A DNA stretch of 64,000 nt from Selaginella moellendorffii (GCF_000143415.4 NW_003314290.1:1328536-1392535); one strand, 5' to 3'. Shown: positions 15,363-18,382, counted from the stretch's first letter. The notes: generated by a model from the letters alone, not told the origin. Numbers and translations: made by a program.

Positions 15363-16286
15363 ATGTGGGGGAGTGGCAAGGCGATGCTCCAGGGCTGGTT
15401 CAATGGTGGCCCCAGCGGCGATGGAGCTGCCGGCGATGGAGCTCCTAGCCTTCTATCGCAGTGGAATTCCTACGCGGAGGTATCGCGCCAGGAGGCCGGG
15501 GGTCTGGATGTGGAAGCCGGCGCGCTCTTCAAATCCGCCAACGACACAATCTCCGGCGCATTCAGCACGTAAGATCTCGTTTCCTCTCCAGATCCTGGTT
15601 TCTAGAGCCCGATCCGTGCTATGCTCGCACACAATTCTGTGTTTAGTTTCATGTTTTCTTTGTCAGGTTGTCTAAGGGCGTGAGAGAGCTTCCTGGAAGC
15701 GTACAATCGGCGACGAGCGGGATTCCTTCTGGAAAGGCGATCACATACTTTGCTCTGCTGCTGGGATCCGGGGTCTTCTTCCTCTTCATCTCCTTCACTA
15801 TGTTCTTGCCGGTGATCGTTCTCGTGCCTCAAAAGTTTGCGTCGTGCTTCACGATCGGATGTCTGCTCGTCATGGGATCTTTCTTCGCGCTGAAAGGTCC
15901 TCGCGCGCAGTTTGCTCACATGATCTCGCAGGAGGTGAGAAGTTCTTAGATTTGTTCCATGGATTGGTGGTCTCACGCTTTCGTTCTTTCTTTCTTTTTT
16001 GGATTTGTAGAGGTTGCCTTTCACTGCGGCCTTCGTTGGAAGCATTGTGGCGACGATCTACGCGTCGATGGTGTTGCACAGCTACTTGTTCTCAGTTCTT
16101 TTCTCTGTAGTTCAGGTAAGCTCGAGCTACTTCGAAAAAATCAAGTTTGCTTCTTTTCTTTTTGCGTGTTTGCAGCTTCTGGCATTGCTCTACTATGTCA
16201 TATCCTACTTCCCAGGTGGCTCCTCGGGCCTCACCTTTATATCCTCCATGGCCAAATCGTCTGCCTCAAGAGTTTTTGGTGGCTAA
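15363..16286 (+). CDS. Got1/SFT2-like vesicle transport protein (4 exons)
   Basis: Exons about 15363-15568, 15667-15934, 16011-16116 and 16176-16286. Motifs FLPVIVLVPQKFA..FTIG, GP..Q..HM, RLPFT and YYVISYFPGG. The start could be 15384. Confidence 0.92.
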
Positions 16287-16511
16287 AAAGTTTGTAAGTT
16301 TTCGTGCTTTCAATGTAGACATTCATTGTTGTAGTTCTTGCCACTTGAAGAAATCGATTGGTGATACTTGGAAGATGAGTAAGCTTCTAGCAAAAAAATG
16401 TTGGAAGACTTGGGAAGAATGTATGGATTCATATTAAGAGAGACAATGACAATGACAATGAAACTAACAATGAGACAATGACAATGAAATACTTAATACA
16501 TAGCTTAAGGC

Positions 16512-17759
16512 TTACGCTTCGTCTCCTTCCTCGTTCATGGCCGCAAAGTCCAGTGGATAGCGAAGAATCCCTCCAATCCCTCCATATCCCGAGCAAAAGC
16601 TAGACCCTTCCTCCGTGTGATTCGTGATTATGTGCAGCTCGCACCCAAATCCTTTGTACTCCTCCGCAAGCCACTCCACCAGAGCCTTCTCTTCCACCTC
16701 CCTGTTCCTTGGAACCTCTTCCTTCGCTTCCTCCTTGCTCAAAACCTTGGTCACCTTGTTCCCGGTCTGGGGATCGTCGTAGACATACCTCCTCGTTTCC
16801 AAATCCTCGTAAACAATCAAGCTCTTCACCGCTCCCATTTCCAACGCCTGGAGCGTGTCCCTGATCCCCGATACGTGCTTGTTGGAGCAGACTCCGACCT
16901 CCTCGAAGAACTCCCCCAGCAGCTTCTTCTCCTGGACGAACTTCACGCTGGCTAGAACATCCTCCGAGAGCTCGATCGCCTGATTAAACCCCCGTTCTCC
17001 TCCATGGGATATAGTCACCACCTTGAGAACTTTGGCCCTCAGCCGGGGATCCAGCAAGGGCTCCAGCTCCGTCTTGAGATCGGCGCTCCCCGCGAGGATC
17101 AATCCCGCAACGTTGGCCTGGCTGCTGCTGGGATCGATGAAGTGCTTCACGGCAGCTTCGGATGCCTGGACGAGATAGTTGTGGCGGCACCCGGTTCTTA
17201 GTCTATCGAATCGCAAGGCCGACTGCCCTCCCCGGCCGTGCTTCTTCGGCAAGTCCACGCTGGACTTGTCGAGGATTAACCGTCAAGCCCCACTGAGCGT
17301 CCCAAACAAGGTCCCGTTACCGTCCATGACGATGAATCCATACTTGGTCTCGGACTCCTCGAGCAGGAAGTCCAAAAGCTCCGTGTGGAACCTCTTGTCG
17401 CAGAGATACGCAAACCGGCTCAAGGGCTTGGCGGGCTCAAAGCTCACGGCAATCATCCTGTCCTTGTTGCCCCCTAGAGCAATCGTCCCCACGAAGATCG
17501 CCAGGCCCCTGGGCGGCACCTTGGAGTAGAGCTTCAGCCGCTGCTGGGCCGATTTGATGGCGCCCTGGACCGACTGGCGATTGGTCCGGCTCTTGATGTT
17601 CGCCGCCGCCCCCATCTCCTCCACCAGGAGCTTCTGGACCCTAGCCACTTGATCTCGCGGCGGCACCATGAGCGTGATCATGCTCGTCCCGTTACCTTGC
17701 ATCTCGCTCAGATCGCCGAGAAGCCTGCGCGTGCGCCATAGCTCCACGCCGACCTCCAT
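16512..17759 (-). CDS. eRF1-like peptide chain release factor interrupted by one in-frame TGA (readthrough candidate or pseudogene)
   Basis: ORFs 17283-17759 and 16512-17258 are in the same frame, joined by TGA plus 8 sense codons ([31 protein letters not shown]). Motifs GNGTSM, NIKS, YLCDKRF, GGQ and GYGGIGGILRY are present; the terminal stop is TAA; no introns. Confidence 0.9.
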
Positions 17760-17809
17760 CGCTTCTTTCTCGCCCTAAAATCTCCTCAAGCCCTACGCGC
17801 AGGGCACGA

Positions 17810-17816
17810 TTATATA
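17810..17816 (-). promoter_or_regulatory. Candidate TATA box of the eRF1-like gene
   Basis: TATATAA on the minus strand about 50 nt upstream of the ATG. Confidence 0.5.
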
Positions 17817-18382
17817 CCCCCAGCTTTTCAATCCTGCCCGTCCGATATAACTCAAATTTAACCTCGGAGATCCACGGCTGGCGTTTGAAAAGAATTTACC
17901 GACGCGAGAATCTTCCTTTTTTACACTAGGGTTCTTCCTGTTTGCATGGTTTTGTTGAACGAGGGCCGCTCAAGCGTGGGCGGAGCCTTCCAAGTGAAAT
18001 CTATGGTCGCTTCTTCCTTTTCCTCGCACATTTAGCGTGTCTAGTGTGTGCGCTCTACCTCGTTCAACGCTCTTTCTCTCACCTACCATTCTTCCACAAA
18101 GGCTGCCGCGCGTGCGCTCTACATTTGAGAGATTTCTCCTCGCCTTGGGGACGAGATTTTGGATTCGCGGTTCGCAGATCTGGGAGGAATCGCTCGGCAA
18201 GTTCAGGTAGCTTTTCTTTGAGGAATTCGCCCAAATTTGTTTTTTTTTTCTTCGGTCTGTGTTCTTCGAATTTTTTTCTGGGCTTTCGGCCTGTGCATGC
18301 TTTGCTCGATTAATGTGGGTGTGTTTCGCGTGATCCAAGTTCTTACAAACTTGTGGTGCTTGTCTCCAAATTCTAGAGAGCT

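Follow-up and report, generated by a model that had tools for sequence, protein, structure and literature searches.

The window analysed here, a stretch of 64,000 nucleotides on Selaginella moellendorffii scaffold GL377594.1, carries on its minus strand an intronless coding sequence (16512-17759, gene SELMODRAFT_416122) with 414 sense codons, interrupted at codon 159 by one in-frame UGA and closed by a UAA. All three Pfam domains of the eukaryotic class-I release factor eRF1 were recognized in its translation (eRF1_1, eRF1_2 and eRF1_3, with E-values of 2e-18, 5e-25 and 1e-25), and translation and alignment revealed intact NIKS, YxCxxxF, GGQ and C-terminal GILRY motifs; by its three domains and its motifs the gene is thus a member of the eRF1 family. 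The second assembled haplotype carries it on GL377575.1 (SELMODRAFT_440399), and its neighbours, a Got1-like gene and a His_Phos_1 gene, are alike in both haplotypes.

The encoded protein is a very divergent paralogue, showing 58% identity to its best match in another species and likewise 58% to the plant eRF1 consensus (42% amino-acid divergence), and its branch in the tree is approximately 100 times as long as the median terminal branch, so that its origin cannot be placed in the tree. Word-based protein searches with the C-terminal piece and with the N-terminal 158 residues, conducted among proteins of 0.55-1.75 times the query length so that fragments could be missed, yielded no orthologue closer than the canonical eRF1s (58-64% identity). 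Organisms B, C and D among the sequencing runs considered below were examined as possible carriers of diverged orthologues and set aside, their copies being near-identical alleles. The canonical S. moellendorffii eRF1 was itself encountered only as contigs that cross-match the locus, differing from it at 11 of the 67 nt of 17207-17273, and we found no paper on a Selaginella eRF1 paralogue in the literature. A retrocopy, which the lack of introns might suggest, was rejected, since the canonical Marchantia eRF1 coding sequence (locus L005, 301-1614) is likewise uninterrupted in the genome and the Ceratopteris eRF1 gene call is of equal uninterrupted length. Judging from these sequences, the eRF1 coding region of land plants seems to have been intronless ancestrally.

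The in-frame UGA and its context

The UGA (17283-17285) occupies the position of the threonine in the canonical ...SGNTREVL... segment and is embedded in the sequence GCU-UGA-CGG-UUA-AUC. It is present in both assembled haplotypes, is older than their divergence and is unchanged in the contigs of three sequencing runs (X1, X8 and X11) that cross it. Readthrough contexts of Type II consist of UGA followed by CGG or CUA (PMC3159437), and the UGA-CGG found at 17285-17280 on the minus strand places this stop in a known leaky class. The two codons that follow the stop, CGG-UUA, agree with the plant CAR-YYA readthrough motif at five of six positions. The second of them (17277-17279, minus strand) is the only UUA among the 47 leucine codons of the gene; it replaces a canonical glutamate codon (GAG or GAA), all three codon positions being changed. 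An Rfam search over 15500-18000, with E-values up to 1, gave no match to a SECIS or to any other Rfam element, and a selenoprotein gene was consequently rejected; to our knowledge, land plants do not possess the selenocysteine machinery.

Transcription and selection across the UGA

At least half of the sampled 31-letter words of the locus were retrieved in 16 runs from several studies, and in X1, X8 and X11 single contigs extended unbroken through the gene up to 17763-17787. These runs were taken for RNA by guess only, and their contigs are hence termed transcript-like. The guess is supported by the fact that none of them covers 17839-17895 on the promoter side, that one contig stops at 17763 straight into Illumina adapter sequence and that the canonical eRF1 has its own contig, which cross-matches in the most conserved segments only.

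Since the contigs end 4-28 nt upstream of the AUG, the 5' untranslated region seems very short. On the 3' side, the X1 and X11 contigs run approximately 700 nt further 3' (below 16300; 4474-5447 in L001/L002) toward the convergent Got1-like gene, and the 3' ends of the two genes may overlap. In the region 3' of the terminal UAA (16440-16492 and 16356-16412), a short (GACAAT)-like repeat of the 3' untranslated region follows directly on the stop, and run X11 displays small indels (7 missing, 2 inserted, 1 missing) and substitutions further downstream.

The public models EFJ23040 and EFJ30499 (387 aa) contain an 84-nt GT..AG "intron" (17260-17343, minus strand) which removes the UGA and 28 codons. 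This segment codes for YGFIVMDGNGTLFGTLSG, which is almost identical to canonical eRF1 (18 residues). In the contigs of X1, X8 and X11 we detected neither a joint at 17343/17260, a rare spliced form being beyond what contigs can exclude, nor a base difference at 17283-17285. The near-canonical 18 residues and the unspliced contigs together indicate that the intron is most likely an annotation device and that the public gene models are probably wrong.

The two haplotypes differ at 13 of 1251 nt within the gene, 11 of these differences being synonymous and the remaining two conservative (V288I and E357D). The pN/pS ratio is 0.054 for the whole gene (binomial P against neutrality 5e-6) and stands at 0.084 over the 256 codons past the UGA (binomial P 7e-4). 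A third allele set, taken from contigs of other runs, added four further synonymous changes and K278R. When the variants downstream of the UGA were pooled, 10 synonymous were counted against 3 conservative changes (P = 5e-5), indicating that the frame past the UGA is still translated. Since no in-frame AUG occurs for approximately 140 codons past the UGA, ordinary reinitiation cannot explain the selection acting on that stretch. We conclude that the paralogue is expressed and under purifying selection.

The hairpin downstream of the UGA

A hairpin on the minus strand (17272-17246) starts 10 nt 3' of the UGA. The intervening spacer CGGUUAAUCC (17273-17282) includes the CGG of UGA-CGG and the unusual UUA codon. 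The 5' arm UCGACAAGUCCA (17261-17272) codes for part of L-D-K-S-S, corresponding to L-H-K-F-T/S in canonical eRF1, and is followed by a 3-nt loop, GCG (17258-17260), and by the 3' arm UGGACUUGCCGA (17246-17257), which codes for part of V-D-L-P-K, an invariant segment leading into the GGQ loop. Of the 12 positions of the stem, 11 are Watson-Crick pairs and the fourth is an A·C mismatch. The sequence and its ViennaRNA fold thus agree exactly, in spacing, stem and loop alike, with the stem-loop described in the first-pass annotation, and the stretch 17246-17285 is the same in the second haplotype.

Over the 46 nt starting from the UGA, the hairpin is both the minimum-free-energy and the centroid structure predicted by ViennaRNA (-15.0 kcal/mol; z = -2.65). 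Equally good folds were obtained from 3 of 200 dinucleotide shuffles, and the 27-nt hairpin alone reaches -13.0 kcal/mol. In the partition function of the whole mRNA, seven of the inner eight stem pairs have probabilities of 0.99-1.0, as compared to 0.66 for the eighth, the loop-closing pair, and 0.71-0.78 for the three outer pairs past the mismatch. No other hairpin of the coding sequence combines at least 9 Watson-Crick pairs with at most one mismatch and a loop of 3-8 nt; 27-nt hairpins of -13 kcal/mol or lower exist at two places only in the 1.36 kb mRNA, and an equally stable 27-nt hairpin is found 6-12 nt downstream of 1.2% of the mRNA codons. Synonymous recoding, in which the peptide was kept and codons were drawn from the gene's own usage (GC3 = 0.78), reached -13.0 kcal/mol over 27 nt in 0.5% of the recodings and -15.0 kcal/mol over 46 nt in 2.1%. 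Single synonymous changes within the 3' arm cost 2.3-6.9 kcal/mol.

These values are to be read against the remainder of the mRNA. A second, stronger local RNA structure, used as an internal control, is located at 17025-17069 on the minus strand (nt 691-735), in codons for ELEPLLDPRLRAKVL with no stop codon adjoining; at -24.2 kcal/mol over 45 nt it is the strongest local structure of the mRNA. Several 40-nt windows of the mRNA also fold better than the one containing the hairpin. The fold of about 150 nt proposed in the first-pass annotation brought no support, as the 153 nt past the UGA are not unusually structured (z = -0.65). An extended 3' structure of 100-150 nt was accordingly rejected, and in this respect the hairpin differs from the viral UGA-CGG signals, whose elements extend over 100-150 nt.

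For comparison with canonical eRF1, that of S. moellendorffii was stood in for by recoding simulations and by five other plant cDNAs. An equally stable hairpin in stop-free eRF1 genes, which would have spoken against a particular role of this one, was absent from the homologous stretch in all five stop-free plant cDNAs (Arabidopsis, Sphagnum, Marchantia, Zea and one further transcriptome). Among all synonymous versions of canonical HKF(T/S)VDL, the best attained -7.4 to -7.6 kcal/mol over 27 nt versus -13.0 kcal/mol for the paralogue, and 9-11% of the canonical-peptide recodings reached -15 kcal/mol over 46 nt via other pairings. A return from D to H (GAC to CAC) weakens the hairpin by 2.7 kcal/mol through loss of the three outer pairs, and one from S to F (UCC to UUC) by 2.9 kcal/mol, as a C-G pair turns into U·G; a change at the S/T position, which lies within the loop, costs nothing. 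The substitution of HKF by DKS therefore does strengthen the stem, as had been proposed. The accompanying caveat that canonical KFTVDL codons are partly self-complementary was equally right: with the canonical residues in this gene's codons an 8-bp stem is already formed at -7.4 kcal/mol, and the site is thus predisposed to pairing. We conclude that the hairpin is real, well placed, specific to the paralogue and dependent on derived residues and codon choices.

The proposal that these changes reflect selection on RNA structure stands in one part only. The DKS residues and their codons favour pairing, whereas selection for the structure is an inference. The substitutions at the stop are not denser than elsewhere in this fast-evolved protein: their clustering is not significant, and other 10-residue windows are changed more densely. 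Of the positions with 95% or higher conservation among canonical plant eRF1s, the paralogue as a whole has changed 29%, and the H of HKF is itself only 70-95% conserved in these proteins. The hairpin is invariant in all haplotypes seen; with approximately 0.4 differences expected there (pS about 0.04), this invariance carries no information.

Readthrough, rival explanations and related systems

For a full-length protein to be made, the in-frame UGA at codon 159 would have to be decoded by the ribosome. We tentatively propose that the hairpin contributes to readthrough of this UGA and was shaped for it, which we regard as quite possible if short of probable, and we consider it a plausible, if unproven, enhancer of readthrough. 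Once the UGA has entered the A site, the ribosome would be faced with the poorly terminating UGA-CGG, and the base of the hairpin, about 10-14 nt downstream, would then be positioned at the mRNA entry channel or immediately outside it. There the hairpin could slow the ribosome or otherwise disfavour release-factor action, a near-cognate tRNA would then be inserted more often, and translation would go on through the M and C domains; in plants, the near-cognate tRNAs at UGA are those for Trp, Cys or Arg. As to its origin, the 3' arm would have been fixed by the invariant VDLPK codons, and the 5' arm may have been turned complementary to it, possibly under selection for the hairpin, via the H to D and F to S replacements together with suitable synonymous codons.

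It is conceivable, although in our view somewhat doubtful, that UGA-CGG gives readthrough by its context alone and that the hairpin is incidental, being a product of GC-rich codons, of the AAG...GAC-UUG self-complementarity built into K-F-x-V-D-L and of the residue changes that come with fast divergence. The pairing already obtained with canonical residues at -7.4 kcal/mol fits such an origin, as do the GC3 of 0.78, the stronger structure at nt 691-735, the recodings of the canonical peptide that reach -15 kcal/mol over 46 nt (9-11%) and the alteration of 29% of the highly conserved positions, with the stop window not the most changed. The spacer moreover exceeds that of proven stimulators, and many cellular readthrough sites are thought to need their immediate context only. 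An incidental hairpin, however, accounts less readily for the rarity with which position and stability occur together (1.2% by position and 0.5% by synonymous recoding), or for the two non-conservative changes and several synonymous choices that all favour pairing.

The UGA could also be bypassed by other means, through minor splicing of the 84-nt segment, non-AUG reinitiation or RNA editing of the U, in which case the hairpin might act on splicing or on nothing. The segment does have GT..AG ends and a length divisible by three, its acceptor falls where the 5' arm of the hairpin meets the loop, contigs drop rare variants and might thus have missed a minor spliced form, and Selaginella edits its organellar RNA heavily. 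We nonetheless judge such a bypass quite improbable, given that neither the 17343/17260 joint nor a base difference at 17283-17285 was seen in three runs, that no SECIS or other Rfam element was detected and that the "intron" codes for 18 near-canonical eRF1 residues, which argues that the segment is kept as coding sequence; its splicing would delete the first strand of the M domain. We also know of no nuclear U-to-C editing in plants. Finally, the gene might be a young pseudogene in which the UGA is a fixed disabling mutation, yielding a 158-residue N-terminal fragment or nothing and leaving the hairpin without a role. Pseudogenization classically begins with a single premature stop, no orthologue with a like arrangement is known, and public annotation had to invent an intron around the stop. 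Pseudogenes are nevertheless expected to show a pN/pS near 1, several lesions and often no expression, whereas here a single stop and no frameshift occur in 415 codons despite the 42% amino-acid divergence, the NIKS, GGQ, YxCxxxF and GILRY motifs are intact, and transcript-like contigs were recovered from runs of several studies. Decay since before the haplotype split was rejected on the basis of the pN/pS values (0.054 for the gene and, since that split, 0.084 downstream of the UGA) and of the pooled 10 synonymous to 3 conservative changes (P = 5e-5), and a young pseudogene appears very improbable indeed.

Readthrough assisted by the hairpin would have its closest parallels in viruses. Type II contexts are used by genes for the alphavirus, tobravirus, pecluvirus, furovirus and pomovirus replicases and by coltivirus VP9 (Firth et al. 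2011, PMC3159437), their 3' stems being typically of at least 12 bp, with a spacer of 7-8 nt, within elements of about 100-150 nt, for which raised conservation at synonymous sites and compensatory substitutions between species are the expected marks; in alphaviruses the 3' structure raises readthrough 3- to 14-fold (PMC3159437). The candidate signal of Selaginella resembles them in its UGA followed by CGG, in its stem of about 12 bp after a short spacer and in its proposed action on the ribosome at the mRNA entry channel. In contrast to them it belongs to a cellular plant gene and is a compact hairpin of 27 nt instead of an extended element of 100-150 nt, no such structure having been found over the 153 nt past the UGA, and its spacer, at 10 nt if counted to the outer pairs or 14 nt if counted to the firmly paired inner stem, is longer than their 7-8 nt. 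The final letters of its -1 and +3 codons, U and C respectively, depart from the plant-virus motif. A structure at a fixed short distance 3' of the stop is also known from the Type III signal of MuLV gag-pol, where this distance is 8 nt (PMC3159437), although MuLV combines UAG-G with a pseudoknot of a kind that the 3-nt-loop hairpin of Selaginella cannot form.

Plant eRF1-1 is autoregulated by readthrough of its terminal stop and nonsense-mediated decay (Nyikó et al. 2017, PMC5397192). The Arabidopsis eRF1-1 locus (L003, 1609-1620) ends with UGA-CAA-UCA, a leaky context of the tobamovirus type (Nyikó et al. 2017, PMC5397192). Both cases involve a release-factor gene whose expression hangs, or in Selaginella would hang, on termination efficiency at a leaky UGA. 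In Arabidopsis, however, it is the regular terminal stop that is leaky and an intron in the 3'UTR that acts as the sensor, whereas in Selaginella the stop lies inside the open reading frame at the border of the N and M domains, there is no intron, and readthrough would be needed for the full protein. The Selaginella paralogue falls outside the eRF1-1 circuit because its leaky stop is internal and it has no intron; its terminal stop is UAA-G and the contigs contain no splice joint. By analogy, it could work by a related logic.

Since the product is a release-factor homologue, the efficiency of readthrough could couple its synthesis to the termination activity of the cell. The bacterial prfB gene, encoding RF2, is autoregulated by +1 frameshifting at an in-frame UGA, and the likeness lies in a release-factor gene interrupted by a stop of the kind read by its own family, whereby a fall in termination could raise synthesis. 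prfB relies on a frameshift and a Shine-Dalgarno-like stimulator, whereas Selaginella would employ in-frame readthrough with the hairpin as a possible stimulator. Extending the proposal, the UGA and its hairpin might serve S. moellendorffii as a sensor of termination efficiency, which we think rather unlikely. Under high canonical eRF1 activity, ribosomes would stop at codon 159, the stop-codon-binding N domain would be the only product released, and the transcript might become liable to decay; ribosomes terminating this early would leave a very long 3' region behind the stop, a feature expected to bring about decay of plant mRNAs. Under low eRF1 activity, the hairpin-assisted UGA-CGG would be read through and the full-length divergent release factor would be made. 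Such a sensor, if true, would parallel in a eukaryote the autoregulation of bacterial RF2 and would give two products from one gene, one of them possibly modulating termination itself.

Programmed readthrough is poorly documented in cellular plant genes, and structure-assisted readthrough is known almost exclusively in viruses. The hairpin is a new candidate of a known class of elements, and the more unusual part is the release-factor paralogue that would depend on readthrough: a natural plant mRNA in which readthrough appears to be needed for the full length of a release-factor homologue, and in which a leaky context is joined to a well-placed hairpin. Should the hairpin not work, the locus would still show that UGA-CGG alone can sustain a selected gene. 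If it does work, it would provide a compact 27-nt readthrough enhancer from a plant gene, and termination-sensing control of a release-factor paralogue would become directly testable.
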